A DNA stretch of 64,000 bases from Guillardia theta CCMP2712 (GCF_000315625.1 NW_005434540.1:1-64000), one strand, 5' to 3'; positions 1 through 42,000 are shown, counted from the stretch's first letter. The notes: generated from the sequence alone by a model not told the origin. A program made the numbers and translations.

Positions 1-3000
1 GCTTTTAATGGTCAGTGGGCCGTACTAGGTAACGGAGGCGAGCTGGGAGTCGAGATCATCGTCACGGTGGACGGGCGGGCGGTGGGAGGGCGAGGGACAG
101 CAGTATTCCAGTACAGGGAGTGGGCGGAGGCCACCAGGGTAGAGCCGAGGTCAGGGCCGGCAGGAGGAGGGCAGAGAGTCATTGTGCGGGTCGCAGGAGG
201 GGAGATCAGACGGATGGAGGCAGTGTGGTGTCGTGTAGGGTCGAGGACCGGCGAGGTCTCCTTGGGAGTGGGGGTAGGCGGGGGGGGAGCGGAGTGCCGG
301 ATGCCAGCTCATGAGCCAGGGAACGTGACCGTGGAGGTAAGCGTCAACGGAGTGGACTGGGGAGGGAGGGCCGGGAGATACGAGTACACGGAGGAGTGCA
401 TGGTGAGACGGGTAGAGCCGTCGTCAGGTCCGGCTGAGGGGGGTACGGAGATAACGCTGTACGGGGCTGGGTTTAGCCGGATGGGGCCTTTGACATGCCG
501 GGTAGGGGCGACGTCAGTAGGCGACTTCAGGGTCTTGTCGGACGAGGCAGGAACATGCAGGACACCCGGGCTCCAGAGGAGAGGAAGGGAGCAGTTGACG
601 TCGGGCTGGCGAAAGTTGCATAGGATGTGGGAGAGAGGAGGGTGTGCTAGGGGCGACCCTTTCTCCTATCGAGCGTCCGTNNNNNNNNNNNNNNNNNNNN
701 NNNNNNNNNNNNNNNNNNNNNNNNNNNNNNNNNNNNNNNNNNNNNNNNNNNNNNNNNNNNNNNNNNNNNNNNNNNNNNNNGATCCAACCGTCGGTGGTGT
801 ACGGTCGTAGCGGGGTGAGGCTTTTGATCGAGGGGGAGGGTTTCAGGGCAGGGGAGAGAGGATATTGCAGGTATCAAGGGGCGAGGTGCGGAGACCAGGT
901 TTGCAGCAAGACTGAAACCACAGGCGGCACGATACTCTCCTCGAGAGCGATGACTTGTCCGTCGCCGAGCCGGGAGGCGTACGATGCGGAAGGGCTTGCG
1001 AGGGTGACTATAGAGATTGGCGGGGCAGAATACACCGGGGCAGGCATGCAGGTGCTCTACGGGAGGGAAGCGACGATATCGGCACTGATACCAAGCTCGG
1101 GTCCGGAGGGAGGAGGGGCGCTGGTGACGGTGGTCGGCTCTTGGATAAGCGGGGTAGGGGGTGCCGGGGTGTACTGCCTTTTTGGGGCAGGACAAGGAAG
1201 CAGGGCAGCTGGGCGGGTGGTATCGTCGAGCATGGCGCTATGCTCGACAAGCCATTTGTTTCCTTCTAACGCAAGCTTTTGCTTGTCGGATTCTCATTCT
1301 AGGTGTTTATCAAACTTGTTTCATTTTACAGTGTTTTCTGTCCTGTCTTCTTCGTTTTCAGCAAGGCGTCGACCCAGGAGACTTGTCATCAATGGTATTA
1401 AGGCTCCAAATGCTCAATCACATCAAGTTTTGGTGCATGGTAGCGAGTTTTGGAATTCTTCTGATATCCATTGCATTTTCCGATTAGCTTCTTCTTCTCA
1501 AATGCTGTATTTCGATGGCAAGTTTCTTTCGTCTAATCAAACTTTATGCTTACTATCGTTGTATTCGTTGCATTTCTTTGATCAAATGTACATCATTCAG
1601 GATGGGTTAATTTCAAATTTTATTCATTTCAAATATTCAAATCTTATTAGAGTACTTTCTGTGATGCCGGAATATTGCTACTACAGCGTCTCCTGTACGC
1701 TTTCGTTCATGCTCGATCAACCTCAAAATTGCAGCGATCTTGAGGTCAAAGTGGGAAATGATCCTTGTGTGATGTCATCTCCTTCTTTTGGCATTACAAA
1801 TTTCTGTAGTTGCATAGTTTCTTCGACATCCATCTCGAACTCTAGCTTCAATGTGTACTCTACTCAGGCAGAGATTCAGTCCAATGTTTCAATCAATATT
1901 TTGGACATACCCAAGATCATAAAAGTAAGTTTCTGGGATGATTCGGTGCAATTTCAGTCTTTTCTTGTCATAGACTTCGATTTTATGATGGACGACGATC
2001 CCTTCATACTTGTAAATGAAAGTTTAGCAAGTTGTCGAAGATCAATACTTTCAACAATTATCTGCTTTCTTGATTTTCAACCTCTCCTAACGACAAGCTT
2101 CAGACAATTTACACTGTGTTTTGGATTTTATCAGCATCCCGGATGGAAAAAGTGTGAAACTTATGATGCATTGCTTTGCCGAAAAGAACTCAAAGTATTT
2201 CCCACAACAGGACCAGCGTACAGTGGGTTTCATGTAACATTTTCAATCGGCTTTTCCCATGCAAGCTGGAAAACTGATGATACCAAAGTATTGTTGGCTA
2301 ACGTATCATATACAAAGCGTCCTGTCCCGATTGATGTCAAATTCATGGGGCGACATTATGCTTCCAGCTGGACTAGTGTCATTCCATCCAAGGTTGGTAA
2401 AGGAAAGATCAAATTAGAAATTCTGGTAGATAACCACATGAAATTTGAACGAGAACTACTCTTATTCGAGCCAACAATCATTCACTTTGTCAATCCCTCA
2501 ATTGTTTCCACACTGCAAGCAACTTTGATAACCATTTGGGGTTCAAACTTTTGTGCCACAGGTCAAAGTTCGCACCAATCGTGCATTGCGATGGTCGGAA
2601 ACCAACAATTCGGATGCAGACTTTGGAGTTGTACTCAGGCAATCTTCCTCTTGAATAGAAGTGAATATGGTAATTTCTCCGTTTCCCTCATAAATCCAAC
2701 AAGATCTAATTGTGTACGACTGATGGTTCAGAGAGGTTTAAATGTTCCGCCAAAGGAAAACCAAACGACGACAGTAAACGACGAACGAAAACAGAAACAA
2801 AGTACAATCGAAACACAAAAAAATCAACTGCAGAATATTCCAGAAATACACTCAATTCAACCAACCTTTGGAAATTCTCGAGTTGAAATAATTGTCACTG
2901 TAGCAGTTAGTCCCAAACCAACAAATTCTAGCAGGTGTAAATTCGGCTTTCGGCATTCCGTCCCTGCAGTCTGGGTGTCTAGTACCCTCGTCACGTGCCC

Positions 3001-6000
3001 AGTACCTCATATCGATGCGCCTCCACAGGGCCTTAACCTGACAGTACAGATCAGCAACAACGGAATAGACTTCTCAACCCCCTCCGAGGCAGCACGCTTC
3101 ATGTACACCTCCTTGCGCCCAATAGCCAAGCTACAGCCGACCACAGGGCTGACCAGCGAGACCACGCGGGTACTGATCACGGGTCAAGCAGGCTTCGGCG
3201 GAAGGATTGCACAAGAGAGCGGAGGGCAGGTGCTGTGTCAGTTCGGTAGCAGCAAGGCCTTGGGAGGTCGGGTCTTGGACGCAGGTATCGAGTGCGATGC
3301 TGAGTCAGGCATAGAAGGCAAGGTGAGTGTGCGGGTCTCAACAGATGGGGGGAGGTCGTGGGAGGACTGGGGGCTGCGATTCGAGTTTGTGAAAGGGATC
3401 GACATAGCCCGAGTAGATCCCTCGACAGGGCCTGTGGCAGGGGGAACACGGGTGACGATAGTCATGGGTCAGCGGTATGATAGCGAGTCGAGCGGGCTGT
3501 CATGCATGTTCGGGCAGACTCCGAGCGCAGGCGTTGCGGAGGTGCTATCCAGCGGAGAGCTGGTCTGCGTTGCACCTGCGGCCAAGACTGAGGCAATCGT
3601 GAAAGTGTACGTGCTGTCGGACGGTCAAATCAGGAGCACGGGGTCTGCCTTCCGATACCGGCACTGGCCCAAGGTCATGGGCCTCGGGNNNNNNNNNNNN
3701 NNNNNNNNNNNNNNNNNNNNNNNNNNNNNNNNNNNNNNNNNNNNNNNNNNNNNNNNNNNNNNNNNNNNNNNNNNNNNNNNNNNNNNNNNNNNNNNNNNNN
3801 NNNNNNNNNNNNNNNNNNNNNNNNNNNNNNNNNNNNNNNNNNNNNNNNNNNNNNNNNNNNNNNNNNNNNNNNNNNNNNNNNNNNNNNNNNNNNNNNNNNN
3901 NNNNNNNNNNNNNNNNNAAAAAGAAAAGGCCCCAAGATCTCGTGATGGTACAGTGACCTTCTTATTACCCCAAGCGATCAGTGACGTCGGAGGATATGTG
4001 TATGTACAATTTGAGCATGACGAAGAGAATAATTCTCAGTATAAACTTAGGCCATTGCAATTCCTTTATCTAAATGATGTAGCAGTCACAGGGATAGAAC
4101 CCTCTCTTGGGAGCAACCTTGGAGGAACGACCATTTTTCTGACTCTATACAACGCTCTCTCAAATTGTAAGGACATGAAAATGCACTGCACGTTTGGCAA
4201 GACGTTGGTCCAAGCATTGGACTGCTCAGACGGTGCCAAACAGATAAGATGTAAGACTCCAGAACAAAGAGATCACACCGGAATGACTTCTGTAGGGCTT
4301 TTGACGGCTATGGGAGAATCCCGAAATCAGATACCATTTCTCTTCCACGAAGAAATATCAGTTTCAGCAATCAACCCACACCAAGGATGTACTCAAACAG
4401 TTCAAACACTTACAGCACACGGCAAGAATATGATACAGAACAATCTATTATCCTGCAAAATCGGCTTTCGGCATTCCGTTCCTGCAGTCTGGGTGTCTAG
4501 TACCCTCGTCACGTGCCCAGTACCTCATATCGATGCGCCTCCACAGGGCCTTAACCTGACAGTACAGATCAGCAACAACGGAATAGACTTCTCAACCCCC
4601 TCCGAGGCAGCACGCTTCATGTACACCTCCTTGCGCCCAATAGCCAAGCTACAGCCGACCACAGGGCTGACCAGCGAGACCACGCGGGTACTGATCACGG
4701 GTCAAGCAGGCTTCGGCGGAAGGATTGCACAAGAGAGCGGAGGGCAGGTGCTGTGTCAGTTCGGTAGCAGCAAGGCCTTGGGAGGTCGGGTCTTGGACGC
4801 AGGTATCGAGTGCGATGCTGAGTCAGGCATAGAAGGCAAGGTGAGTGTGCGGGTCTCAACAGATGGGGGGAGGTCGTGGGAGGACTGGGGGCTGCGATTC
4901 GAGTTTGTGAAAGGGATCGACATAGCCCGAGTAGATCCCTCGACAGGGCCTGTGGCAGGGGGAACACGGGTGACGATAGTCATGGGTCAGCGGTATGATA
5001 GCGAGTCGAGCGGGCTGTCATGCATGTTCGGGCAGACTCCGAGCGCAGGCGTTGCGGAGGTGCTATCCAGCGGAGAGCTGGTCTGCGTTGCACCTGCGGC
5101 CAAGACTGAGGCAATCGTGAAAGTGTACGTGCTGTCGGACGGTCAAATCAGGAGCACGGGGTCTGCCTTCCGATACCGGCACTGGCCCAAGGTCATGGGC
5201 CTCGGGCCCCGATCGGGACCAGCGTCAAGGGGACAAACGATCACACTCCAGGCAGCGGGCGGGTCGTGGGGACTAGAAGACCCCGCGTGGTGCCGAGTGA
5301 GCGGGGGGCAAGCTTTATCGGCAGCTTTCATGACTGAGAGCTTGATGACGTGCCGGCTACCTCCTCATGGTCGCGGGAACGCAACGATAGAAGCAAGCTT
5401 CAACGGAAGGGACTGGGTAGAGGTAGCGGGGAGGTTCGAGTATAGAGAGCGATGCCTCATCACGGGGGTGGAGCCTTCGCTCGGACTGATGGGAGGGATC
5501 ACGAGTGTCACGTTGACAGGAGTCGGGTTGAAGGGCCTAGGCAAGAGCCGGTGCCGCATCGGGAGCAGCTGGGGGTCAAGGCTACTGGAGGTTTCAGACG
5601 CGCTTGTGATTTGCGGAGCACCAGAGGGCGGGTGGGGCTCTGTGATGCCTCCGGGAGATGTCGGAGAGGCAGATGGCGGGCGTGTGAAAGGCCTCACGGT
5701 AGGTTTGATGCTGGAAGGAGCTAGTCAGGAGGCGTGCGAAATGAAGGAGGCATACTTTCTGTACTCACCGCTGCGAATAGACAGCGTTTCGCCTTCCAGC
5801 TTGGTACAAGGTCGTCAGACGGTAGTGACGGTGGTCGGACAGACTTTCGATGAGGCCAGGAGGGTAGGATGCAAGTACTCGGAAGCTGCTGGGGCATCCT
5901 TGCAGAGCGGCGCATCCTGGGATACACAGGAAGGGACGGTGATCACGTCGTCCATGGCACTATGCAAGAGCCCCCAGATGTCCGGGAAGAGCGAAGACTT

Positions 6001-9000
6001 GTCACTCCAGGTCAGCTACGATGGTGGACAGCTCTCGTCGAGCCGACTGTCGATACGTTATATCCCAGAGCCGACGATTACAAGGCTAGAGCCAAGCGCT
6101 GGGTCAAGCGCAGGCGGCCAGGTGATCACGGTGATTGGGAGCAACATGAGAGCATCCAGGTCGGGCACCTACTGCCTTTTCGGGAACCGAGGTCAGATGC
6201 CAGCCTTGCATGTCACGACCAGCTCGATGGAGTGTGTTTCTGCTCGACAGAGTAGCCCGGCGAATGTGTCGTTTGAGGTTTTGTTTACAGGGGTTGAGAC
6301 TTTCACTCGGAGCCAGGTCACCTTTTTGTACATGAATGATAGTACGCCCTTACTGAGGCCGAGCACCGGGCCTACGCGAGGAGGGATAAGCATCTCTGTG
6401 TACGGCATCTTTCGATTAGAAAGCACTTCTTTGTCAGTGACATGTACCTTTGGTGATCGTCGTGTCAGCGCAATACTCCACACGAGCTCGCACATCGTCT
6501 GCGTCCTGCCTCCACGCGAGGAGGAAGGCAGCGCGGGTTTTCATCTTCGCGAAGGGTCACGCGAGCTAGGCTCAGCTCACTTCCTGTATCGTCGTCCGTA
6601 TGACCTCATTGGTGTATCACCTTCGTCAAGCGTTGTGAGGGGAGGGGTGGTCGTAGCTCTGCACACGGAGCAGGTCTTGCTGCCTCAAAGTACTCAATCT
6701 GAAAGTCTTGGCTGTGTCTTCGTGGGCTTGGAAGCCACCGTCCAAGTGGAAGGCTCCGTGACCGCTTCAGGGAGAATCGGTTGCCCTGTACCGCCATGGA
6801 AGACAGAGGAGCTCGTACAGATCTACGTCCTGAGGGACTATGGGGCTGAGCTCCAAGGGTCGGGAGCTACCTTTCGGTACCAGAAGGAGCTGACTTTGAT
6901 TAGCGTGCATCCATCTCGAATGGTCGGGGCAGCATCGCCGTATACTCTTAGTATCTTGGGGCGAGGGATAGAGCCGTCAACCGATCTGGTGTGCAAAGTA
7001 GGGGCGAATGATCAATCATACAGGGCGGTATACCTGTCATCAACGTCGATGAAATGCCAGGTCCGTGTCAACAGACCAGGTCGCTTCAAGCTGATGGTCA
7101 TGCGACAAGGAGCAACTCTCAGCAATGATCAACTATCAATCGAGGTATACAACGAAGAGTCCATAATTACCCTGGTACCAAGCCAAGGGCCAGATCGCGG
7201 AGGGACGGTAGTGCGGTTGTACGGAGCTGCGGAGTTCGACGAGAGAACTCGCATCGTATTTGGCCTGGAGGAGTGCAGGATAATAGATGTCCAGGATCAA
7301 GAGCTGTCGTGCCTGTCGCCAGGTCATTTCCTTCCTGGAAATGCGTCTTCAGCTCGAATCAAGGTGACGGCATACTCTTTGGGTATCATGATAGGCTCCA
7401 GGACATTCGAATACCAGAGAGAGGCACAGGTGATCGATATCAACCCCTCATCTGGAGACTTGAGAGGAGGGACCTGGATACAAGTCATTGGTGCACACTT
7501 CAACATGCATACAAGCCTGTCTTGCCGTTTCTCGGCATGGGGAGTATCGGAGCGTGTCACATACGCTTCTCGAGGTCGAGCTCGATGGGAAACCTCGTCG
7601 TCGTTGCAATGCTTGACTCCGGCATGGCCTACAGTAGGCCTCGTCACTGTTGACATTAGCAACAACGGAGTGGACTACTCAGTGCAGAGCAGGGAGTTCT
7701 TGTACGAGCAAACGCCGACAGTCGTGAACGCCATTGCTACTCGAGCGTTGACGAGCAAAATCGGTGTGGCCAGCTTCCTTGTACATGGGCTGCACTTCTC
7801 AAAGTCGCGGCACCTTCGATGCGCTGGAAGCACAGCAGCGGCTGAGTTTCTGACATCGTCTGCACTGCTCTGTGCGATCCCACTCAAGCAGGAGGGATAC
7901 ACTGCCATCGAAGTCACCAACAATGGCCAAGACTACAGCGCCGACGGCTTTGTGTACGATTGGAGCACAGCAGACTCTGATTTCGAAGGCGGGATGATGC
8001 TCACTCCTAGCCATGGGCCAAGCGACGGAGGCACTGTTGTGCAGGTCATGAACCTAAGGGTAGAGAGTACACAAGACGACAGCGTGACATGCAGCTTTGA
8101 TGGGAGCGACACGCCAGGGACAGTGGTGGGGACGAGCCAAGTGAAGTGTGTCAGTCCAACTTTGAGGAAGATGCCGGTAGATAGGTTGATAGGGGAGCTC
8201 GGGCATCGCGTCCTGGTGGAGGTGAGGTGGGAGAGCAGGAACAAAACAAGAGTTGCAAGATCGTACTTTGTTTATTTCATGCCGACTCTTATCTATAGTA
8301 TTCATCCGTCGATGGGACCTATCCAAGGTGTCACTGAGGTGCAAGTGAGGATCAGTATGATCTCGAATTCGCAGGATCTTCGTTGCAAGTTTTCGTTTGA
8401 CATCAAATCACCGGTTGAATTGGTTGTTAATGGCACATTCTCAACATCATCGATCATGCGTTGTCAGTCGCCTGCTGCATTTGTTGAAACCGAAGCCAGA
8501 GTCTCAGTAAGCAACAATAATGCTGACTACGCAACTCCAGTGACACCATTTATTTATGTTCGAACGCCAACTTTGTCAGGAGTAGTTGAATCAAGGCATC
8601 AGCTTCTTGTTGTAGGCAGTCATTTTCGAAACACGCCCTTTATCCGTTGTACATCGGGGCTAGCTACTTTCATAAGCACCACGAAGATTCGGTGTAGAAA
8701 GCCCTATGCTCCTGGACAAAACCTGGCAGTCGAGGCTAGTAATGACGGCTTTACTTTCAGTACCAACGGTATTACAGTCTCGGACTGGATAGATCCATCT
8801 ATCTACCCTTCCTTGGGGCCTGTTCGTGGCGGTATCGTAATACTCGTCAGAGGTGTTCCAGCCTCTGCGATTGCTTCAATAAGCGTGAATGGGTCTTGGA
8901 CTCCAATTGAATCTCGTGATGGTACAGTGACCTTCTTATTACCCCAAGCGATCAGTGACGTCGGAGGATATGTGTATGTACAATTTGAGCATGACGAAGA

Positions 9001-12000
9001 GAATAATTCTCAGTATAAACTTAGGCCATTGCAATTCCTTTATCTAAATGATGTAGCAGTCACAGGGATAGAACCCTCTCTTGGGAGCAACCTTGGAGGA
9101 ACGACCATTTTTCTGACTCTATACAACGCTCTCTCAAATTGTAAGGACATGAAAATGCACTGCACGTTTGGCAAGACGTTGGTCCAAGCATTGGACTGCT
9201 CAGACGGTGCCAAACAGATAAGATGTAAGACTCCAGAACAAAGAGATCACACCGGAATGACTTCTGTAGGGCTTTTGACGGCTATGGGAGAATCCCGAAA
9301 TCAGATACCATTTCTCTTCCACGAAGAAATATCAGTTTCAGCAATCAACCCACACCAAGGATGTACTCAAACAGTTCAAACACTTACAGCACACGGCAAG
9401 AATATGGAACAGTCGACACTTGATGTGCAAATTCGGCTTTCGGCATTCCGTCCCTGCAGTCTGGGTGTCTAGTACCCTCGTCACGTGCCCAGTACCTCAT
9501 ATCGATGCGCCTCCACAGGGCCTTAACCTGACAGTACAGATCAGCAACAACGGAATAGACTTCTCAACCCCCTCCGAGGCAGCACGCTTCATGTACACCT
9601 CCTTGCGCCCAATAGCCAAGCTACAGCCGACCACAGGGCTGACCAGCGAGACCACGCGGGTACTGATCACGGGTCAAGCAGGCTTCGGCGGAAGGATTGC
9701 ACAAGAGAGCGGAGGGCAGGTGCTGTGTCAGTTCGGTAGCAGCAAGGCCTTGGGAGGTCGGGTCTTGGACGCAGGTATCGAGTGCGATGCTGAGTCAGGC
9801 ATAGAAGGCAAGGTGAGTGTGCGGGTCTCAACAGATGGGGGGAGGTCGTGGGAGGACTGGGGGCTGCGATTCGAGTTTGTGAAAGGGATCGACATAGCCC
9901 GAGTAGATCCCTCGACAGGGCCTGTGGCAGGGGGAACACGGGTGACGATAGTCATGGGTCAGCGGTATGATAGCGAGTCGAGCGGGCTGTCATGCATGTT
10001 CGGGCAGACTCCGAGCGCAGGCGTTGCGGAGGTGCTATCCAGCGGAGAGCTGGTCTGCGTTGCACCTGCGGCCAAGACTGAGGCAATCGTGAAAGTGTAC
10101 GTGCTGTCGGACGGTCAAATCAGGAGCACGGGGTCTGCCTTCCGATACCGGCACTGGCCCAAGGTCATGGGCCTCGGGCCCCGATCGGGACCAGCGTCAA
10201 GGGGACAAACGATCACACTCCAGGCAGCGGGCGGGTCGTGGGGACTAGAAGACCCCGCGTGGTGCCGAGTGAGCGGGGGGCAAGCTTTATCGGCAGCTTT
10301 CATGACTGAGAGCTTGATGACGTGCCGGCTACCTCCTCATGGTCGCGGGAACGCAACGATAGAAGCAAGCTTCAACGGAAGGGACTGGGTAGAGGTAGCG
10401 GGGAGGTTCGAGTATAGAGAGCGATGCCTCATCACGGGGGTGGAGCCTTCGCTCGGACTGATGGGAGGGATCACGAGTGTCACGTTGACAGGAGTCGGGT
10501 TGAAGGGCCTAGGCAAGAGCCGGTGCCGCATCGGGAGCAGCTGGGGGTCAAGGCTACTGGAGGTTTCAGACGCGCTTGTGATTTGCGGAGCACCAGAGGG
10601 CGGGTGGGGCTCTGTGATGCCTCCGGGAGATGTCGGAGAGGCAGATGGCGGGCGTGTGAAAGGCCTCACGGTAGGTTTGATGCTGGAAGGAGCTAGTCAG
10701 GAGGCGTGCGAAATGAAGGAGGCATACTTTCTGTACTCACCGCTGCGAATAGACAGCGTTTCGCCTTCCAGCTTGGTACAAGGTCGTCAGACGGTAGTGA
10801 CGGTGGTCGGACAGACTTTCGATGAGGCCAGGAGGGTAGGATGCAAGTACTCGGAAGCTGCTGGGGCATCCTTGCAGAGCGGCGCATCCTGGGATACACA
10901 GGAAGGGACGGTGATCACGTCGTCCATGGCACTATGCAAGAGCCCCCAGATGTCCGGGAAGAGCGAAGACTTGTCACTCCAGGTCAGCTACGATGGTGGA
11001 CAGCTCTCGTCGAGCCGACTGTCGATACGTTATATCCCAGAGCCGACGATTACAAGGCTAGAGCCAAGCGCTGGGTCAAGCGCAGGCGGCCAGGTGATCA
11101 CGGTGATTGGGAGCAACATGAGAGCATCCAGGTCGGGCACCTACTGCCTTTTCGGGAACCGAGGTCAGATGCCAGCCTTGCATGTCACGACCAGCTCGAT
11201 GGAGTGTGTTTCTGCTCGACAGAGTAGCCCGGCGAATGTGTCGTTTGAGGTTTTGTTTACAGGGGTTGAGACTTTCACTCGGAGCCAGGTCACCTTTTTG
11301 TACATGAATGATAGTACGCCCTTACTGAGGCCGAGCACCGGGCCTACGCGAGGAGGGATAAGCATCTCTGTGTACGGCATCTTGCGATTAGAAAGCACTT
11401 CTTTGTCAGTGACATGTACCTTTGGTGATCGTCGTGTCAGCGCAATACTCCACACGAGCTCGCACATCGTCTGCGTCCTGCCTCCACGCGAGGAGGAAGG
11501 CAGCGCGGGTTTTCATCTTCGCGAAGGGTCACGCGAGCTAGGCTCAGCTCACTTCCTGTATCGTCGTCCGTATGACCTCGTTGGTGTATCACTTCGTCAG
11601 CGTTGTGAGGGAGGGGTGGTCGTAGCTCTGCACACGGAGCAGGTCTTGCTGCCTCAAAGTAATACTCAATCTGAAAGTCTTGGCTGTGTCTTCGTGGGCT
11701 TGGAAGCCACCGTCCAAGTGGAAGGCTCCGTGACCGCTTCAGGGAGAATCGGTTGCCCTGTACCGCCATGGAAGACAGAGGAGCTCGTACAGATCCACGT
11801 CCTGAGGGACTATGGGGCTGAGCTCCAAGGGTCGGGAGCTACCTTTCGGTACCAGAAGGAGCTGACTTTGATTAGCGTGCATCCATCTCGAATGGTCGGG
11901 GCAGCATCGCCGTATACTCTTAGTATCTTGGGGCGAGGGATAGAGCCGTCAACCGATCTGGTGTGCAAAGTAGGGGCGAATGATCAATCATACAGGGCGG

Positions 12001-30000: not shown

Positions 30001-33000
30001 CTTTGTCACGCGGAGGAGTAGTGTACACGTACTACGTAGAGGAGAGAGTGTCCGGGCTATCACCTTGCTCAGGGCCAGCGGAAGGGTCAACCCAAGTCGC
30101 CGTCACAGGGTCCGGCTTCCTCGAGGTAGCCAGCCTCACCTGCCGCTTCGGCGCGAGTGTAGGAGATGGCAGCCCAAGCTCCGGCGGTCTGGGCAGCTGG
30201 AGGGAGGTACCGGGGAAGTGGCGGTCGTCTACGCTTGTGGGCTGCTCAGCACCTGCAGCATCCGGAGAGCAGACGATGCAGGTCCAGCTCAGCAACAACG
30301 GGGTCGACTTCTCCTCCGCGAGCGCGACCTACACGTACGAGCGAGCCCCTACCGTCACATCGCTGAGCCTCCTTGCCCTTGACGGGAGCTCTGGTCAGGT
30401 CGAGCAGGACCACGGACGCACGGTGCGGGTGATCGGGAAGCACTTTGTCGCAAGCCCGCAGCTGAGGTGCAGCCTGCCGGGGGTCGCCAGATACATCACG
30501 TCGTCTATGGTCGATTGTGTATCAGGAGGGGGCCGTGTCGGGGGGAACCTGACGGTCGAGGTAAGCAACAACGGTCAGGACTGGAGCAGCGGAGGCTTGG
30601 GGCTGCTCGCTTGGGAGGATATGCCCCGCTTCTCCGAGGAGGTCCAGCTTGAGCCGTCCATGGGTCCCAGCAGAGGCGGAACACAGGTCACCGTCCGTCT
30701 GCTTGGTGCGGAGGGGCTCCAGGGCGTATCTTTATCCCTGCAGGTGGGACTAGAGGGCAGTGCAGAATGCCGCTACCAGAGCGGTACAGAGTACCGGTGT
30801 CAGATGCCCGAGGTACGCTCGACGACGAACCGTGTGCTGTCCCGATACACGGTACCGGTACACCTCGTCATAGAGGGACAGCCGGCTTTGTCACGCGGAG
30901 GAGTAGTGTACACGTACTACGTAGAGGAGAGAGTGTCCGGGCTATCACCTTGCTCAGGGCCAGCGGAAGGGTCAACCCAAGTCGCCGTCACAGGGTCCGG
31001 CTTCCTCGAGGTAGCCAGCCTCACCTGCCGCTTCGGCGCGAGTGTAGGAGATGGTAGCCCAAGCTCCGGCGGTCTGGGCAGCTGGAGGGAGGTACCGGGG
31101 AAGTGGCGGTCGTCTACGCTTGTAGGCTGCTCAGCACCTGCAGCATCCGGAGAGCAGACGATGCAGGTCCAGCTCAGCAACAACGGGGTCGACTTCTCCT
31201 CCGCGAGCGCGACCTACACGTACGAGCGAGCCCCTACCGTCACATCGCTGAGCCTCCTTGCCCTTGACGGGAGCTCTGGTCAGGTCGAGCAGGACCACGG
31301 ACGCACGGTGCGGGTGATCGGGAAGCACTTTGTCGCAAGCCCGCAGCTGAGGTGCAGCCTGCCGGGGGTCGCCAGATACATCACGTCGTCTATGGTCGAT
31401 TGTGTATCAGGAGGGGGCCGTGTCGGGGGGAACCTGACGGTCGAGGTAAGCAACAACGGTCAGGACTGGAGCAGAGATGGAGTCTCAATGGTGAGGGGAG
31501 GATCGTATTGGATTAGTGTCATACCCAGCAGTGGTCCAACGTCAGGTGGCAACTTTGTCAGTGTTGTCATGGCACACGGCTATGAATCCCCTGTCTTGAC
31601 ATGCAGATTTGGAGGGGTATGGGTATCGGGAACACGTGTAACGAGTACCGAGATTTCATGCCTTGTTCCTCCTTCGTCTGCATCTGTAGCGATTGCATTG
31701 ACGCTGATATCAGACAGCCTTGAAGAGTGGGGTGCAGCTACATATGAGTATGTGCAATATCCGAGGATTGATGCGCTAGTACCTTCGCATGGCAGCACTC
31801 TGTACCCGTTTGTGATCTCATTAGTTGGAGCGAGCTTCGTCGAATCTAACATGCTGCGGTGCAGGTTTAGCACGCAAGACAAACATGGACTCAATACTCC
31901 CATTTCATGGGCAGAAGCAGCATTTCAATCTTCCACTCTCTTACACTGTCTTTCGCCTGTGCTCAATGGTAATGCGAACATGATCGTGGAGGTTAGCAAC
32001 AATGCGAAGGATTTCGTTGCAAACCAAGCAGCAATGGAGCTGCACAAGCCACCTGAGCTTAGCAGAGTTATTCCTTCTACCATTCTTTCGCGCCTGATGT
32101 ATTCTATCACAATTTATGGGAACGGGTTGGGAATGATAAGAGGAAGAACATGTTGGGTCGGGAAAGAAGGCATACATTTGTCAGAGGTTGTATCTGACTC
32201 AATGGTCATTTGCAGAGGACAAATCAACAAGGCAGGCAACTTCAGTATTGCGTTGAGCAGTAACGGTGATGACTACATACCCACCGGTCTTCGTCTTATT
32301 TCAGTAGACTCCCACCTTCTTGAAGTAGACTTCGAGCCCACTGTGGGGTCCTTGTCTGGAGGCACTCGTGTGCTCGTGCGTGGTCGCAGCGCAAGAGGTG
32401 GTGTAGCGATGACATCTGTACTCTTCGGACAAGTGCAAGTCGGATGTTCGATGCTCGCACCGGGCCTTGCATCATGTGTTTCACCTGTTGCCGACGAATC
32501 TAGTGTCTCCATCACTCCCTGCCTTGGAGGAGTATGTATTCGTGGCTGGACGGCGAATAGCACTTTTCAGTATAGAGCGCTTCCCGTCCTCATCTCTGTC
32601 AATCCTAGCATCGGTCCTCAGGAGGGAGGGAAACTTGTTACAATCACCCTGGAGAATATTGATCTCAGCGACAGGTCGTTTTGCAAGTTTGGGAGCTCGG
32701 GGATGATTCCAGGTACGACAGTATCTAGTTCTGAGGTAGCTTGTATTACTCCTCGATCAAATTCCTCGATCGTACATGTTCAAGTCACTGTGAATCGTCA
32801 AGAGTACTCGAGCATTAGTCCTTTTGATAGATATGTATACATGAGTCGAGCAAAGATCGAGAGCATGGTGCCGGACGTTTTGATGACTAGCATCCAACAG
32901 GACATCACTCTAGTGGGTGGACCTTTCCTCAATCAAGAGCGGATGACCTGCAAGTTCGGGAAGGAGAAGAGCTTTGTAGCCATGCAGATATCCACGAGCG

Positions 33001-36000
33001 TTTTGATGTGCTTGAATGTATTCTTGTCGTCACCTGGAAACGCAAGTGTAAAAGTGCTTTTGGACGACATTCCTTCTATAGATAGCAACATAGAGCTGAT
33101 GTGCTTTCAGCCCCCAGTGATCGAGCGCGTCGATCCCTCGATCCTGCTCACGGGAGGATCCATGCTTGTGCAATTCAGAGATCTCCGTGGAGATCCTCGA
33201 TTATCATTGAAGCTGGAGGGTGCTACTTGCGATTGTGTGCGAAAAGGTGACTGGGAGCTTGAATGCAACGTGCCAAACGTTACAGAAGGGGTCCGAGCCT
33301 TGCAGCTCTATGACGAGATGTATCCGGCCGCTTACTATTCACAGAAATTCGATGTGATGGTGCAAGGCCATCGACGGATCATGGAGATACATCCTTCTCT
33401 CGTGGTGACAGGGGCGTCCCAGGGCCTTTCAGTTACGGTCATTGGAGACTTTTTCGCTAGGGGAGCGGTGGCTTGTGCCTTCACTAGCACGAGTACGGAC
33501 GGTACGTACATGACATCGTCCGCAGTCCGATGTCCTTTGCCTTGGAAGGAGGACCTTTCTGGATATGGTGCTGGGTTGAGAACTGTTTCAGTTGACTCTT
33601 TGGTGTATCATTATAGTGAATCTCCGGTTATTCCCTTTTCTGTCGTTTCATTTACGACAATACATCCCTCTGTCATATCTGCGACTCATTCTACTCTGAT
33701 TTGGATTTATGGTCATGGGTTCTCAAACGATATAGCCCATGGGGTTGAGTGCAGCTTTCTTCACTCAAAATATCTCGCGAGGTTTCACACTTCATCGAAG
33801 CTTTCAACCTATGTGTCAGGATCGCTTCCTCCCGGAAACGTCACTTTTACGATTGATTTGAAGGGATTTTCAACATTGTTTCCAATCCAGATTGATGTTC
33901 CGCTGATGGTCCTTAGTCCCTCGACTGGCCCAATGGCAAACAGCTTCATGGTGCATATTGCATTACCCTATATTCCTCCTGCATTAGAAAATTTGACATG
34001 TCGATTCGGACAACAGCTATCCAATTGCCCTATGCATGTTCAATCCACAATTGAGTTCGTTTGCCAAACTCCAATAGTATCCACTGAATCAAAAATTCCT
34101 GTTTCTTGCTTTTGGAAAAAGTATCTCTTCAAATCATACATAGAATTCTGGAATCCCGCCAAAAAGTTTGAAATATACCATTTCATGCCGTCATCCGGGC
34201 GTTGTACAAGAAACATTCAAATTACGGTGTATGGATCATTTTTGAATCATTCTTCAATATTATGTTCAAACGGGAAAAATAACACCCATTTGGTCACGAT
34301 AATGTCTACAACAATGTTGCTTTGTTCGCTTCCACCACCATTGGTTGATGGAAAAATCAAATTGACATTAACTGACAAGGATTCAAAAACTACGACAACC
34401 TTGGAATATCACAGCTATTTTGGATTCAATTTATCCAATCTCAATCCAAACAAAATCCTTTCAGGTGTGAGCCGACTTGTAACCCTCGAAGGGAGTGAAT
34501 TCCAAGAGTGGAAATCTTTAACCTCATGCTGTAAGTTTGGATCGTATCAACCTTCCTTCCTTACTGTCTTGTCCGACTCAAGGATGATTTGCTCGTCGCC
34601 TGAAGATCCGCAACGCGGGAACCTCTCCATCTCGCTGAGTGTTGACTGCAAGCATTTCACCAAGTGCCCATCCACAATCTCTCTCCAGGTGACCTCTACA
34701 CCATCTGTAGAGATTATAAGCCCGACACGAGGATACATCAATCATCCGGTAGTTGTCTCTTTCAGACTTCAAGCAGAGCTCGGATCCAGTCATCAGTTGT
34801 ATTGCTGCTGGGGCAATGAGACATATTCCAGCATCGGTCGGACAAGCGGTAGGAGATTCGAGTGCCCGTTTCCACAAGCCAAGCAAGCGGGTCTCGGGCT
34901 CCTGCAAATATCCATGTCACCATACAATTGTTCAAGTGAACCAGAGTATCGGGTACCGTTCGAGCTCATGGGACCTTTGCATGTGGAGAGCTTGATTCCA
35001 TCAGTGGGGCCAGTTAACGGTGGGGGACAAATCACCATCGTTGGCAGCGGCTTCCATCAATGCGATCACCTCCAGCCCAGCTGCAGCTTCGGAAGCTCTC
35101 ATCCTGGACTCTGCTTGATCGTTACTGACACTGTGATGTTGTGCTCGACGCCTTCTCAAGAGGCGGGTTACTCATCGCTGACCTTGACAACCTGTGGCAA
35201 TACTGTTTCATTCGCAAACATCTTGTTCATGTTTGAGGAACCACCCGAGATCCATCGACTCAATCCGACGACGTTGTCGGCATTGAAGACAGAAGTCACT
35301 CTGATTGGCAGAGGTTTCCGACCCAGTTTACGCATGATTTGTGTGATTGGAGAATCGCAACCAGTGCTTACATCTTACCTTTCCCCGTCGAGGGAAGTAT
35401 GTGCTGTCTCAACGCCGGTAACGGGAAATTTGACATTGGAGATATACAGCCACCAAGGTTTTGCACCCATCTTTGTCTGGAACATGGCATCTATGGCCTC
35501 AAGAGTGTTGAGTTGCAGCCCAAGCAGTGGCCCGAAGGATGGAAACACGACGGTACATATCTTGCTCACCATGGAGTCTGCGGGAACCTTCGATTCTTGT
35601 CGATTCGGAGGACTCCGAGTGCCAGTCACAAGGCACCGACGAGATGATATCTCGTGTACAACGCCGCAGGTGTCAGTTGCAGGCATCGTGAGTGCAGATG
35701 TATGTGACGGCGAGTCTTGCATTTTCATGAGCGAATTCCACTTCTATGAAACGGAAAGGCTAATCTCTGTGTACCCATCATCCGGGCCGACTACAGGAGG
35801 CACTATCGTGACCGTCATCGGGAGCTACTTTCAAGACATTAACATCAGGCTACGGCTGTCAGACGAGAGCACTCAAAGAGCCATCTGGCTGACAAGCACA
35901 ACTCTATTGACCACCATACCAGCAGCAGCATCTGCTCAGCACGTTGACATCAAAGTAGGCAACAACGGGGTCGACTTCTCCTCCGCGAGCGCGACCTACA

Positions 36001-39000
36001 CGTACGAGCGAGCCCCTACCGTCACATCGCTGAGCCTCCTTGCCCTTGACGGGAGCTCTGGTCAGGTCGAGCAGGACCACGGACGCACGGTGCGGGTGAT
36101 CGGGAAGCACTTTGTCGCAAGCCCGCAGCTGAGGTGCAGCCTGCCGGGGGTCGCCAGATACATCACGTCGTCTATGGTCGATTGTGTATCAGGAGGGGGC
36201 CGTGTCGGGGGGAACCTGACGGTCGAGGTAAGCAACAACGGTCAGGACTGGAGCAGCGGAGGCTTGGGGCTGCTCGCTTGGGAGGATACGCCCCGCTTCT
36301 CCGAGGAGGTCCAGCTTGAGCCGACCATGGGTCCCAGCAGAGGCGGAACACAGGTCACCGTCCGTCTGCTTGGTGCGGAGGGGCTCCAGGGCGTATCTTT
36401 ATCCCTGCAGGTGGGACTAGAGGGCAGTGCAGAATGCCGCTACCAGAGCGGTACAGAGTACCGGTGTCAGATGCCCGAGGTACGCTCGACGACGAACCGT
36501 GTGCTGTCCCGATACACGGTACCGGTACACCTCGTCATAGAGGGACAGCCGGCTTTGTCACGCGGAGGAGTAGTGTACACGTACTACGTAGAGGAGAGAG
36601 TGTCCGGGCTATCACCTTGCTCAGGGCCAGCGGAAGGGTCAACCCAAGTCGCCGTCACAGGGTCCGGCTTCCTCGAGGTAGCCAGCCTCACCTGCCGCTT
36701 CGGCGCGAGTGTAGGAGATGGTAGCCCAAGCTCCGGCGGTCTGGGCAGCTGGAGGGAGGTACCGGGGAAGTGGCGGTCGTCTACGCTTGTAGGCTGCTCA
36801 GCACCTGCAGCATCCGGAGAGCAGACGATGCAGGTCCAGCTCAGCAACAACGGGGTCGACTTCTCCTCCGCGAGCGCGACCTACACGTACGAGCGAGCCC
36901 CTACCGTCACATCGCTGAGCCTCCTTGCCCTTGACGGGAGCTCTGGTCAGGTCGAGCAGGACCACGGACGCACGGTGCGGGTGATCGGGAAGCACTTTGT
37001 CGCAAGCCCGCAGCTGAGGTGCAGCCTGCCGGGGGTCGCCAGATACCTCACGTCGTCTATGGTCGATTGTGTATCAGGAGGGGGCCGTGTCGGGGGGAAC
37101 CTGACGGTCGAGGTAAGCAACAACGGTCAGGACTGGAGCAGAGATGGAGTTTCAATGGTGAGGGGAGGATCGTATTGGATTAGTGTCATACCCAGCAGTG
37201 GTCCAACGTCAGGTGGCAACTTTGTCAGTGTTGTCATGGCACACGGCTATGAATCCCCTGTCTTGACATGCAGATTTGGAGGGGTATGGGTATCGGGAAC
37301 ACGTGTAACGAGTACCGAGATTTCATGCCTTGTTCCTCCTTCGTCTGCATCTGTAGCGATTGCATTGACGCTGATATCAGACAGCCTTGAAGAGTGGGGT
37401 GCAGCTACATATGAGTATGTGCAATATCCGAGGATTGATGCGCTAGTACCTTCGCATGGCAGCACTCTGTACCCGTTTGTGATCTCATTAGTTGGAGCGA
37501 GCTTCGTCGAATCTAACATGCTGCGGTGCAGGTTTAGCACGCAAGACAAACATGGACTCAATACTCCCATTTCATGGGCAGAAGCAGCATTTCAATCTTC
37601 CACTCTCTTACACTGTCTTTCGCCTGTGCTCAATGGTAATGCGAACATGATCGTGGAGGTTAGCAACAATGCGAAGGATTTCGTTGCAAACCAAGCAGCA
37701 ATGGAGCTGCACAAGCCACCTGAGCTTAGCAGAGTTATTCCTTCTACCATTCTTTCGCGCCTGATGTATTCTATCACAATTTATGGGAACGGGTTGGGAA
37801 TGATAAGAGGAAGAACATGTTGGGTCGGGAAAGAAGGCATACATTTGTCAGAGGTTGTATCTGACTCAATGGTCATTTGCAGAGGACAAATCAACAAGGC
37901 AGGCAACTTCAGTATTGCGTTGAGCAGTAACGGTGATGACTACATACCCACCGGTCTTCGTCTTATTTCAGTAGACTCCCACCTTCTTGAAGTAGACTTC
38001 GAGCCCACTGTGGGGTCCTTGTCTGGAGGCACTCGTGTGCTCGTGCGTGGTCGCAGCGCAAGAGGTGGTGTAGCGATGACATCTGTACTCTTCGGACAAG
38101 TGCAAGTCGGATGTTCGATGCTCGCACCGGGCCTTGCATCATGTGTTTCACCTGTTGCCGACGAATCTAGTGTCTCCATCACTCCCTGCCTTGGAGGAGT
38201 ATGTATTCGTGGCTGGACGGCGAATAGCACTTTTCAGTATAGAGCGCTTCCCGTCCTCATCTCTGTCAACCCTAGCATCGGTCCTCAGGAGGGAGGGAAA
38301 CTTGTTACAATCACCCTGGAGAATATTGATCTCAGCGACAGGTCGTTTTGCAAGTTTGGGAGCTCGGGGATGATTCCAGGTACGACAGTATCTAGTTCTG
38401 AGGTAGCTTGTATTACTCCTCGATCAAATTCCTCGATCGTACATGTTCAAGTCACTGTGAATCGTCAAGAGTACTCGAGCATTAGTCCTTTTGATAGATA
38501 TGTATACATGAGTCGAGCAAAGATCGAGAGCATGGTGCCGGACGTTTTGATGACTAGCATCCAACAGGACATCACTCTAGTGGGTGGACCTTTCCTCAAT
38601 CAAGAGCGGATGACCTGCAAGTTCGGGAAGGAGAAGAGCTTTGTAGCCATGCAGATATCCACGAGCGTTTTGATGTGCTTGAATGTATTCTTGTCGTCAC
38701 CTGGAAACGCAAGTGTAAAAGTGCTTTTGGACGACATTCCTTCTATAGATAGCAACATAGAGCTGATGTGCTTTCAGCCCCCAGTGATCGAGCGCGTCGA
38801 TCCCTCGATCCTGCTCACGGGAGGATCCATGCTTGTGCAATTCAGAGATCTCCGTGGAGATCCTCGATTATCATTGAAGCTGGAGGGTGCTACTTGCGAT
38901 TGTGTGCGAAAAGGTGACTGGGAGCTTGAATGCAACGTGCCAAACGTTACAGAAGGGGTCCGAGCCTTGCAGCTCTATGACGAGATGTATCCGGCCGCTT

Positions 39001-42000
39001 ACTATTCACAGAAATTCGATGTGATGGTGCAAGGCCATCGACGGATCATGGAGATACATCCTTCTCTCGTGGTGACAGGGGCGTCCCAGGGCCTTTCAGT
39101 TACGGTCATTGGAGACTTTTTCGCTAGGGGAGCGGTGGCTTGTGCCTTCACTAGCACGAGTACGGACGGTACGTACATGACATCGTCCGCAGTCCGATGT
39201 CCCTTGCCGGTCATGACAGAGACGACTTTGGAGAGGGAATACTTGTATAAAGTGAGTGTGGGCAACTTCTTGGTGCACAACGACGAGGGATTGAAATGGA
39301 TGATTGCTGTCGTTGATACGTTGGCACCAAAGTCATTGTCCAAATTCAACAAAAGCATCATCACTATAGTTGGTAAACATTTTCAGGAATGGAAATCTTT
39401 AACCTCATGCTGTAAGTTTGGATCGTATCAACCTTCCTTCCTTACTGTCTTGTCCGACTCAAGGATGATTTGCTCGTCGCCTGAAGATCCGCAACGCGGG
39501 AACCTCTCCATCTCGCTGAGTGTTGACTGCAAGCATTTCACCAAGTGCCCATCCACAATCTCTCTCCAGGTGACCTCTACACCATCTGTAGAGATTATAA
39601 GCCCGACACGAGGATACATCAATCATCCGGTAGTTGTCTCTTTCAGACTTCAAGCAGAGCTCGGATCCAGTCATCAGTTGTATTGCTGCTGGGGCAATGA
39701 GACATATTCCAGCATCGGTCGGACAAGCGGTAGGAGATTCGAGTGCCCGTTTCCACAAGCCAAGCAAGCGGGTCTCGGGCTCCTGCAAATATCCATGTCA
39801 CCATACAATTGTTCAAGTGAACCAGAGTATCGGGTACCGTTCGAGCTCATGGGACCTTTGCATGTGGAGAGCTTGATTCCATCAGTGGGGCCAGTTAACG
39901 GTGGGGGACAAATCACCATCGTTGGCAGCGGCTTCCATCAATGCGATCACCTCCAGCCCAGCTGCAGCTTCGGAAGCTCTCATCCTGGACTCTGCTTGAT
40001 CGTTACTGACACTGTGATGTTGTGCTCGACGCCTTCTCAAGAGGCGGGTTACTCATCGCTGACCTTGACAACCTGTGGCAATACTGTTTCATTCGCAAAC
40101 ATCTTGTTCATGTTTGAGGAACCACCCGAGATCCATCGACTCAATCCGACGACGTTGTCGGCATTGAAGACAGAAGTCACTCTGATTGGCAGAGGTTTCC
40201 GACCCAGTTTACGCATGATTTGTGTGATTGGAGAATCGCAACCAGTGCTTACATCTTACCTTTCCCCGTCGAGGGAAGTATGTGCTGTCTCAACGCCGGT
40301 AACGGGAAATTTGACATTGGAGATATACAGCCACCAAGGTTTTGCACCCATCTTTGTCTGGAACATGGCATCTATGGCCTCAAGAGTGTTGAGTTGCAGC
40401 CCAAGCAGTGGCCCGAAGGATGGAAACACGACGGTACATATCTTGCTCACCATGGAGTCTGCGGGAACCTTCGATTCTTGTCGATTCGGAGGACTCCGAG
40501 TGCCAGTCACAAGGCACCGACGAGATGATATCTCGTGTACAACGCCGCAGGTGTCAGTTGCAGGCATCGTGAGTGCAGATGTATGTGACGGCGAGTCTTG
40601 CATTTTCATGAGCGAATTCCACTTCTATGAAACAGAAAGGCTAATCTCTGTGTACCCATCATCCGGGCCGACTACAGGAGGCACTATCGTGACCGTCATC
40701 GGGAGCTACTTTCAAGACATTAACATCAGGCTACGGCTGTCAGACGAGAGAACTCAAAGAGCCATCTGGCTGACAAGCACAACTCTATTGACCACCATAC
40801 CAGCAGCAGCATCTGCTCAGCACGTTGACATCAAAGTAGGCAACAACGGGGTCGACTTCTCCTCCGCGAGCGCGACCTATACGTACGAGCGAGCCCCTAC
40901 CGTCACATCGCTGAGCCTCCTTGCCCTTGACGGGAGCTCTGGTCAGGTCGAGCAGGACCACGGACGCACGGTGCGGGTGATCGGGAAGCACTTTGTCGCA
41001 AGCCCGCAGCTGAGGTGCAGCCTGCCGGGGGTCGCCAGATACCTCACGTCGTCTATGGTCGATTGTGTATCAGGAGGGGGCCGTGTCGGGGGGAACCTGA
41101 CGGTCGAGGTAAGCAACAACGGTCAGGACTGGAGCAGCGGAGGCTTGGGGCTGCTCGCTTGGGAGGATACGCCCCGCTTCTCCGAGGAGGTCCAGCTTGA
41201 GCCGACCATGGGTCCCAGCAGAGGCGGAACACAGGTCACCGTCCGTCTGCTTGGTGCGGAGGGGCTCCAGGGCGTATCTTTATCCCTGCAGGTGGGACTA
41301 GAGGGCAGTGCAGAATGCCGCTACCAGAGCGGTACAGAGTACCGGTGTCAGATGCCCGAGGTACGCTCGACGACGAACCGTGTGCTGTCCCGATACACGG
41401 TACCGGTACACCTCGTCATAGAGGGACAGCCGGCTTTGTCACGCGGAGGAGTAGTGTACACGTACTACGTAGAGGAGAGAGTGTCCGGGCTATCACCTTG
41501 CTCAGGGCCAGCGGAAGGGTCAACCCAAGTCGCCGTCACAGGGTCCGGCTTCCTCGAGGTAGCCAGCCTCACCTGCCGCTTCGGCGCGAGTGTAGGAGAT
41601 GGTAGTCCAAGCTCCGGCGGTCTGGGCAGCTGGAGGGAGGTACCGGGGAAGTGGCGGTCGTCTACGCTTGTAGGCTGCTCAGCACCTGCAGCATCCGGAG
41701 AGCAGACGATGCAGGTCCAGCTCAGCAACAACGGGGTCGATTTTGTTGGCGATCTTTCGTTTGGATTTTACAGGCTTCCAGTAGTTCTCAATGTTGATTA
41801 CATGGTTCAATCAAGTCCTTTTTTGGTTGAAGTTTCGATCACCGTCGATCGCTTGTCACATTTCTGTTCCTTCACTATGGTTCTTGGCACAAACATCATG
41901 TCCTGTTACTTGGCAACTCCAGAGAATTTGATTTGCAATTCCAAAACCAAGATGAATGGAAATTTCACAGTTTCAATTAGCTGTGACTCTGTATTGTTTG

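Follow-up and report, generated by a model that had tools for sequence, protein, structure and literature searches.

We analyzed the first 64 kb of contig C134 of Guillardia theta CCMP2712 (64,000 nucleotides, hereafter the window), and found that the region of interest lies inside one giant gene encoding a long array of IPT/TIG domains, in which near-identical DNA cassettes recur in several orders. We consider it likely that these cassettes were produced by nested segmental duplication and gene conversion within the TIG array, that is, by concerted evolution, and that they are the passive outcome of this process, not a diversifying device. A previous reading of the sequence alone (the sequence-only reading) had proposed a recombination or segmental gene-conversion system that generates length and order variants of a surface receptor, analogous to mosaic antigen or allorecognition loci.

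Self-BLASTN of the window returned 49 plus-strand pairs of at least 200 bp at 98.2-100% identity, the longest of which (4.3-4.8 kb) were 99.4-99.8% identical; this repeat pattern is far beyond chance. The offsets found were 4974, 2257, 885, 5667 and 4881 bp, together with long-range ones including 15902 and 22455 bp, so that the five coexisting periods given by the sequence-only reading (4972, 2259, 885, 5667 and 4881 bp) were all recovered. From a position-equivalence map (union-find segmentation of the self-matches, in which u denotes a unique segment), the following order was obtained, matching the one proposed earlier letter for letter: pA-A-gap-C-A-B-u1-C-A-B-L-D-M-E-D-F-G-H-I-D'-M-u2-pA'-A-gap-J-A-J-A-B-L-D-F-N-E-D-F-N-E-D-F-G-u3-I-D'-F-N-E-D-F-G-H-I-D'-F-N-E-D(part)-u4. 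Each cassette has 2 to 10 copies within the window. The alternative successors also described earlier are real in the assembly: A is followed by B or J, B by u1 or L, D by M or F, F by G or N, and G by H or u3. The principal cassettes and blocks are as follows.

2940..3688, plus strand: cassette A, copy 1, first 749 bp, cut by gap 1
4458-5958, 9430-10930, 20814-22314, 23071-24571 and 25330-26830, plus strand: cassette A, full copies of 1501 bp
5959..8262, also 10931-13234 and 26831-29134, plus strand: cassette B, 2304 bp, with 9 copy-specific single-nucleotide polymorphisms (SNPs)
3937..4457, also 8911-9412, plus strand: cassette C, the first copy joining A in frame
24572..25329, also 22523-23070 plus gap 2, plus strand: cassette J, making the 2257-2259-bp period with A
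13235..18710, plus strand: first block, L-D-M-E-D-F-G-H-I-D'-M
14687-16753 (G), 16754-16925 (H) and 16926-18384 (I), plus strand: recurring at 31475-33541 (G), 34500-35958 (I) and 37142-40839 (G, H, I)
18711..20698, plus strand: u2, single in the window
29135..41740, plus strand: second block, L followed by 885-bp D-F-N-E units and ending in a truncated D

This order can be parsed as a set of nested duplications: C-A-B-u1 in tandem (4974 bp), A-J in tandem (2257 bp) and D-F-N-E in tandem (885 bp), and, at larger levels, a pair of ~5-kb super-units (5667 and 4881 bp) as well as one large duplication from A-B-L-D to I-D' (offsets 15902 and 22455). The D-F-N-E units of the second block are nested in the two super-units, which differ by the presence of u3 (33542-34499) or H.

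The cassettes belong to a single giant gene that is mostly intronless and extends over at least 53 kb (~17,500 codons); its 5' end is missing because the contig begins inside the TIG array. The plus-strand open frames at 644-9472, 9420-20915, 20849-22624, 22320-48002 and 48176-51808 are jointly read as this one gene, with a domain order of 157 TIG domains, Cys-rich repeats, a beta-rich ectodomain, 10 transmembrane (TM) helices and an acidic tail. Three pieces of the array scored 354.9, 276.4 and 247.6 bits with the TIG profile, against a cut-off of 20.9, and PF01833 (Pfam) matched array pieces with E values from 1e-75 to 1e-108. The domains were counted with an iterated hidden Markov model trained on the window itself.

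1..46976, plus strand: IPT/TIG domain array, 157 domain matches spanning 136-46976
41741..46976, plus strand: membrane-proximal unique TIG domains, AT-richer, with a GC content at third codon positions (GC3) of 0.42

The junctions between cassettes are in register, and the hybrid domains that they create are all complete TIG domains. The branch points coincide with motifs conserved among TIG units, namely C-x-F-G, S-N-N-G-x-D-F/W-S and T/S-S-S-x-x-C: A branches before C-K-F-G-F; the D1/D2, I/D2, D/u4 and F/G/N branch points fall after S-N-N-G-V-D or S-N-N-G-Q-D-W-S; and the A2/B/J and D2/M/F branch points lie around T-S-S...C. The alternative continuations M and F+N share the same TIG phase, with ~50% of bases identical. 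We considered whether M could be an old F+N copy that patchy conversion had kept distinct, and rejected this because an identity of ~50% indicates different TIG units. From the in-register junctions, we infer that unequal homologous recombination between TIG units probably created the recent nested segmental duplications, with exchange points at the few motifs common to all TIG units; the 'alternative successors' would then be duplication junctions. When the junctions were examined for a shared recombination signal, none was found, the conserved TIG motifs being all that they have in common. The use of such ordinary motifs argues against the proposal that length and order variants of a surface receptor are continually produced by a programmed or selected system, although the combination of near-identical cassettes in several orders is what such a system would yield.

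The differences between copies indicate that sequence has been exchanged among them. In one duplicated block, D2 showed 0/206 differences compared with 5/119 in the adjoining M (Fisher's exact test, P = 0.006). The nine singletons of B were perfectly clustered by copy (6 out of 1260 orderings, by our own count), and the D sites 13454 and 13469, which are 15 nt apart, exhibited all four allele combinations. The G-H-I copies mostly followed the topology ((2,3),1), with G and I closest in copies 2 and 3, yet H is common to copies 1 and 3. These incongruent SNP patterns point to gene conversion among the copies, although a mixed assembly consensus could mimic part of them. Such conversion would maintain the 99-100% identity and, over time, would enrich the copies in GC. 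GC3 rises from 0.42 in unique segments to 0.53 in those with 2-3 copies and 0.68 in those with at least 4 copies, reaching 0.78 in D; this gradient fits a long-running GC-biased conversion of much-copied segments, a direction of causality that we infer.

We further compared the copy-specific changes with respect to the reading frame. Among 49 such changes, 28 were synonymous and 21 non-synonymous, with a distribution of 13/5/31 over the three codon positions and 35 transitions to 14 transversions. The excess of synonymous and third-position changes indicates real mutations under purifying selection, neither errors nor diversification. Diversifying selection was thus not found among the copy differences (28 synonymous versus 21 non-synonymous). 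Donor cassettes were also sought elsewhere in the genome (87.1 Mb in 669 contigs): whole-genome searches with A, the L-to-M segment and u2 returned this locus, the scaffolds C553 and C488, and fragments of ~100 nt on C143 and C49. The sequence-only reading had suggested a search for donor loci or paralogous giant genes. A paralogous giant TIG gene is present on contig C56, and the searches with these three segments revealed no donor archive outside the locus.

This paralogue, the one detected in G. theta (C56:206000-245200, 39% identity in the C-terminal module), contains at least 123 TIG domains and two assembly gaps. It carries internal repeats of its own, one of 1703 bp (offset 5744) and one of 1264 bp (period 792 bp), each with 99.8% identity; they are mostly GC-richer than the sequence around them. 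Since the paralogue behaves alike, cassette duplication appears to be a generic property of such arrays, which also speaks against programmed diversification. Expression of the gene was very low under the conditions of one 2026 RNA run, with 4 of 19.8 million reads placed on the segment 16324-22323, and an almost silent gene is likewise not what a variant-producing receptor system would predict. In addition, the SNP fractions in DNA reads of 2026 and the alleles of 2021 contigs showed no change from the original assembly, within the limits of 38-nt reads that do not show order. On the other side, gene-conversion signatures are present, the protein is probably surface-exposed as judged from its predicted domains, and the unplaced scaffolds show the further combinations B-L-D-M-u2 and B(265 nt)-u5-D2. 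Taking both sides together, we regard programmed or selected diversification as very unlikely. Young cassettes, recombination and conversion were upheld from the earlier proposal, whereas a dedicated system of the antigen or allorecognition type was not, given the lack of donors, the synonymous excess and the stable SNP fractions.

The independent data covered the segment 16324-22323 (6,000 letters, without internal repeat) and consisted of two 2026 DNA sets (X34 and X35, chromatin immunoprecipitation (ChIP) libraries with 38-nt reads), the RNA run of 2026 and contigs from a DNA run of 2021 (X4). In X34, depth was 36 for G, 22.7 for H, 32 for I, 22.8 for u2, 68 for A and ~129 for D' (solved from a mixed bin), and X35 ranked the segments identically, although its value for A was somewhat lower. 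When u2 is counted as two copies, the ratios over both sets were ~2.7-3.2 for G, 1.6-2.0 for H, 2.5-2.8 for I, 4.8-5.9 for A and ~11 for D' (X34 alone: 3.2, 2.0, 2.8, 5.9 and ~11). The ceiling on the mean genome depth is 11.5 in X34 (1003.6 Mb/87.1 Mb) and 11.1 in X35; because of these maxima, ~11 per copy represents the single-copy level, and the copies are therefore not over-expanded. The resulting counts are about 3 for G and for I, 2 for H, 5-6 for A, 11-12 for D' and ~2 for u2. In X4, the G-u3 joint, single in the assembly, had a k-mer depth of 74, and the other segments scaled accordingly, with H at 122, u2 at 140, I at 208, G at 261, A2 at 381 and D' at ~900.

Moreover, eleven SNPs by which copies differ in the assembly were seen again in the 2026 reads, with frequencies close to those predicted, for example 0.52 and 0.62 where 1/2 was expected, 0.59 and 0.73 for 2/3, and 0.07 for 1/9. 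The 2021 contigs confirmed the joint types C-A, A2-B, A2-J-pA-A, G-u3-I and D1-D2. The six copies of cassette A differ at 4 sites in all, one of which (22166) is unsupported by reads, and five extra variants at 9-15% in A, which none of the copies in the window has, suggest one more copy of A that the window lacks.

These data bear on the possibility that the mosaic is an assembly artefact, in which the draft assembler either lengthened a shorter array or wrongly joined reads of a few copies into a mosaic. Depth scaled with assembly copy number in two independent data sets; if anything, it hints at more copies (u2 ~2 versus 1, D' ~11-13 versus 9-10). The recovery of paralogue-specific SNPs at expected fractions, the joints confirmed by the 2021 contigs and a codon-position bias unlike that of errors also argue against an artefact. 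The assembly is nevertheless locally defective, with three gaps inside the gene, two frame-broken hybrid joints exactly at cassette borders (9405-9429 and 20697-20813), two unplaced scaffolds carrying the same cassettes with different in-frame joints, and one base contradicted by all reads covering it; a mixed consensus could also yield clustered SNP mosaics. We judge a largely artefactual mosaic to be improbable. The gaps and the second broken joint are located as follows.

681..780: gap 0, 100 N, with frame 0 before and frame 1 after
3689..3917: gap 1, 229 N, between A1 and C
22324..22522: gap 2, 199 N, equal in length to its twin 24581-24779 in the next A-J unit
20697..20813, plus strand: u2-to-A joint, a three-way hybrid in which u2 is followed by 67 nt of the 2819 type and 48 nt of the J type, with loss of the u2 frame

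At gap 1, continuity as written is not plausible. The A1-C adjacency of its flanks is found in no other copy, and 19 unmatched bases open the contig after the gap. The flanks share a frame if the rest of one 4972-4974-bp unit is hidden, which amounts to 3456 bp (3 x 1152) beyond the N run; the gap thus probably hides at least A2, and most likely A2-B-u1 or more. Continuity across gap 2 is plausible because of the twin of equal length and because a 2021 contig supports the path A2-J-pA-A across it. The frame is lost just after this gap through two 1-nt deletions within 22523-22566 relative to the twin, which are typical of a poor contig edge. Base 22166 is A in the assembly and G in 94/94 reads of 2026, in the 2021 contig and in four other A2 copies; it is probably a base error, lying 157 nt from the contig edge.

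The frame breaks at three sites, namely the deletion pair after gap 2 and the two hybrid joints. The C-to-A joint at 9405-9429 combines the C type with the type of scaffold C488 and is 2 nt shorter than its in-frame twin at 4439-4457. At the u2-to-A joint, scaffold C488 instead leads from u2 into A through another joint of 119 nt, which is in frame throughout, and a 640-nt contig from the independent 2021 run fits the C488 joint (490 + 119 + 31 nt) at full u2 depth. Because C488 and the 2021 contig carry an in-frame joint, both broken joints are probable consensus artefacts of collapsed reads, not signs of pseudogenisation. We also asked whether introns could account for the changes of frame at ~9.4 and ~20.7 kb and rejected this idea, since TIG coding is continuous on both sides and the offsets of 1-2 nt lie exactly at cassette borders. 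Two of the 'alternative predecessors' of A, being frame-broken hybrids, resemble assembly artefacts. Given the gaps and local chimerism of the draft assembly, the cassette order is only partly reliable, and it is tentative across the gaps and at the two joints.

The two unplaced scaffolds C553 (4093 bp) and C488 (5258 bp) belong to this locus and look like the two ends of a second u2 copy. Scaffold C553 contains A2-B...B-L-D-M and the start of u2, and C488 contains the end of u2, the joint, A, 265 nt of B, a new unique TIG stretch of 580 nt (u5), D2-F-N-E-D1, a gap and D2-F-G. Segment u2, which is AT-richer and occurs once in the window, is present in ~2 copies in the genome by depth; its ends are also found on these scaffolds, which explain the second copy. 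The combined counts of window and scaffolds match the depths, and the locus is therefore under-assembled, not over-assembled. Within u2, depth is raised over the interval 19762-20239, where the flanking sequences of a 2021 contig also differ; fragments of ~100 nt from this interval, at 93-98% identity and reordered, lie on C143:835-1133 (minus strand), with a 90% piece on C49. A collinear orthologue of u2 was found in a Hanusia phi transcript (57% amino acid identity over 600 aa), indicating that the backbone is old and expressed in a sister genus; a search with the u2 joint returned this transcript as the sole match.

The same scaffolds could represent the other allele if a shorter gene had two alleles (or nuclei) that differ in structure and these had been concatenated into one sequence; half of the 'copies' would then be allelic, and the divergence of 0.2-0.8% would be heterozygosity. 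SNPs at 20-60% even in the 'unique' u2 would agree with this, as would the non-integer ratios obtained when u2 is taken as one copy (I ~1.4, A ~2.4-3). However, the per-copy depth of ~11 equals the maximum mean depth (11.5 and 11.1), and diploidy would need twice the bases unless both ChIP libraries were ~2-fold enriched; the single-copy joint in X4 lies at half the u2 depth (74 versus 140); and the tandem units of 885 and 2257 bp occur within single contigs. A literature search on the ploidy of G. theta yielded nothing relevant. We consider two concatenated alleles an improbable explanation, and nested duplication with gene conversion is preferred.

Several observations weigh against that preference. 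The two hybrid joints break the frame and, if real, would imply that the 5' 22 kb is not translated with the membrane anchor. The GC3 gradient could instead reflect a greater readiness of GC-rich segments to duplicate. Copy number and order were checked with 38-nt reads and short contigs, none of which span the repeats, and the ChIP libraries may be ~2-fold enriched over the whole locus, which would halve the copy numbers and fit two structurally different alleles. Almost no RNA was detected, and one strain (CCMP2712) was covered, while copy-number polymorphism is the usual hallmark of such arrays.

Downstream of the TIG array, the gene comprises the following parts.

46977..48900, plus strand: Cys-rich ephrin-receptor-like/GCC2-GCC3 repeats, with two GT-AG introns inside
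47983-48030 and 48057-48196, plus strand: GT-AG introns flanking a 26-nt exon in the Cys-rich region
48900..50260, plus strand: beta-rich juxtamembrane ectodomain, conserved, without Pfam match
50260..51900, plus strand: ten-helix transmembrane domain, containing an intron at 51773-51823
51900..52997, plus strand: cytoplasmic tail, acidic and Ser-rich, with the stop codon at 52995-52997

Short GT-AG introns are confined to the 3' end, and the public gene model implies one further intron near 52.2 kb. The C-terminal open reading frame (ORF) falls in the same 90% cluster as XP_005821996/GUITHDRAFT_146773, an 'IPT/TIG domain-containing protein' of 2,580 aa. That model starts at nucleotide 44499 (44499-52997) and covers the last sixth of the reading frame, excluding the upstream 44 kb of TIG coding sequence. 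In the tail, an acidic Ser-rich motif (D-I/V-S-S-D/E...) with A-x-x-W-L after it occurs several times, as it does in the Cryptomonas curvata homologue. Beyond the gene, the ORF at 60627-61844 on the plus strand matches the WD40 repeat (PF00400, 32 bits) and lies in a region of strong G-over-C skew (0.37 at 60-62 kb). A literature search found no paper connecting G. theta with TIG domains.

The Cys-rich repeats scored 19.4-20.3 in single-sequence Pfam searches, under the cut-off of 23.1; a family profile, however, matched residues 1658-1779 of Mst1 with an E value of 1e-10. Mst1 is a Chlamydomonas mastigoneme protein (PDB 8tx1, 8wa2 and 9b4h; PMC11015965, PMC10602792). The same repeats aligned with a Toxoplasma gondii GCC2/GCC3 protein (P0112) at an hhalign probability of 99.7% over 165 columns, and the membrane part gave no alignment with one apicomplexan sequence.

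A structural model of the 10-TM domain had a predicted local distance difference test score (pLDDT) of 78 and a predicted template modelling score (pTM) of 0.79, with ten hydrophobic helices predicted. In an exhaustive structural search (VIA), the model matched TMEM16F (Z 8.2, 208 aligned residues), TMEM16K (6.9, 220), TMEM16A (6.7), afTMEM16 (6.6), TMEM63A (6.4, 258), OSCA1.2 (6.1, 285) and TMC-2 (5.4). TMEM16, OSCA/TMEM63 and TMC were the sole membrane families covering the whole domain, with Z scores of 5.4-8.2 over 190-285 residues, which are within the noise for helical proteins. Pfam and PDB sequence searches gave no match of the 10-TM domain to the TMEM16/OSCA/TMC families, a Foldseek search of the C-terminal module against PDB returned nothing at E ≤ 0.001, and other fold searches with this module gave weak tectonic-like and EMP70 rows (Atlas) and feature-search scores of at most 0.8. 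A resemblance of the modelled domain to the TMEM16/OSCA/TMEM63/TMC fold is thus weakly suggested.

The surface location and function of the protein are predictions. The ~157 Ig-like domains would form a very long extracellular filament on a polytopic anchor, and its candidate roles are adhesion, a fibre on the cell surface or flagellum, and a tethered mechanosensor. It is also conceivable, although a long shot, that the array is an unstable 'length dial', with ongoing in-register recombination varying the number and order of cassettes between lineages, and perhaps within cultures, and so tuning the reach of a filament of ~0.5 micrometres fused within a single polypeptide to a TMEM16/OSCA/TMC-like ten-helix domain (a self-contained tether-plus-channel mechanosensor or a recognition receptor). 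If this were true, the GC3 gradient would record long-standing biased gene conversion.

We also searched for homologues in other species. Conservation of the C-terminal module extends to Cryptomonas curvata (37%), Rhodomonas salina (29%) and many metagenome contigs. Among the latter, a Joint Genome Institute (JGI) contig carries an orthologue with 59% identity in the C-terminal region and ends ~11.8 kb upstream of the membrane module. This orthologue contains a young TIG-array repeat (L012:745-1746) of 189 bp at 98.4% with a period of 813; its proximal 10 kb holds that repeat only, and the corresponding part of the G. theta gene is likewise unique. A protein search with cassette A gave nothing at E ≤ 1e-20, and an exact 40-mer of D2 had no match in JGI metagenome contigs. 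Guillardia theta is a marine alga. Freshwater and lake metagenome runs contained 5-55% of the near-exact 31-mers of the gene, possibly owing to a close freshwater relative, to the use of the alga in a study or to library carry-over.

With ~17,500 aa, compared with 2,580 aa in the public fragment, the protein is one of the largest predicted in algae, and its paralogue is equally large; both giant genes belong to a cryptophyte-conserved family with an uncharacterised 10-TM domain. The locus is also a clean example of intragenic concerted evolution, and its stepwise GC3 could be used in the study of biased gene conversion in a lineage whose recombination is barely known. The reference sequence is locally wrong at this locus, with gaps, chimeric joints and a collapsed copy.

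In comparison with known systems, the protein resembles Mst1 in its Cys-rich region. Mst1 has Ig-like domains, forms an extracellular filament by polymerisation and is not known to have a membrane domain of its own; its length is 1987 residues, whereas the predicted G. theta protein is ~9 times longer and has its own 10-TM anchor. Apicomplexan CRMPs (GCC2-GCC3 proteins) end in a multi-pass membrane region and are not known to carry a TIG array; the likeness extends to the Cys repeats.

Mosaic loci that vary by conversion include trypanosome VSG, Borrelia vlsE, Neisseria pilE/pilS, Plasmodium var, Hydractinia Alr and Botryllus fuhc. The G. theta locus shares with them the re-use of near-identical pieces in a presumably surface-exposed protein and the footprints of conversion. 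However, neither an archive of silent donors nor diversifying selection was found, SNP fractions did not change between samplings, expression showed no bias that could be detected, and the cassettes are homogenised, not diversified.

A closer counterpart is provided by concerted intragenic arrays, such as human LPA kringle IV-2, the triplicated 10.5-kb block of nebulin, mucin, filaggrin, the SRCR repeats of DMBT1 and giant bacterial Big/Ig-repeat adhesins. The common features are in-frame units of one domain, 99-100% identity, nested periods, in-register junctions, mosaic SNPs and purifying selection. The G. theta array differs in that a single gene of a unicellular alga, with ~157 domains, holds nested cassette sets of 0.9, 2.3, 5 and ~16 kb, and in that GC3 rises stepwise with copy number, whereas the classical cases are defined by copy-number polymorphism between individuals. 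The locus is thus a striking case of a known process, not a new kind of mechanism.

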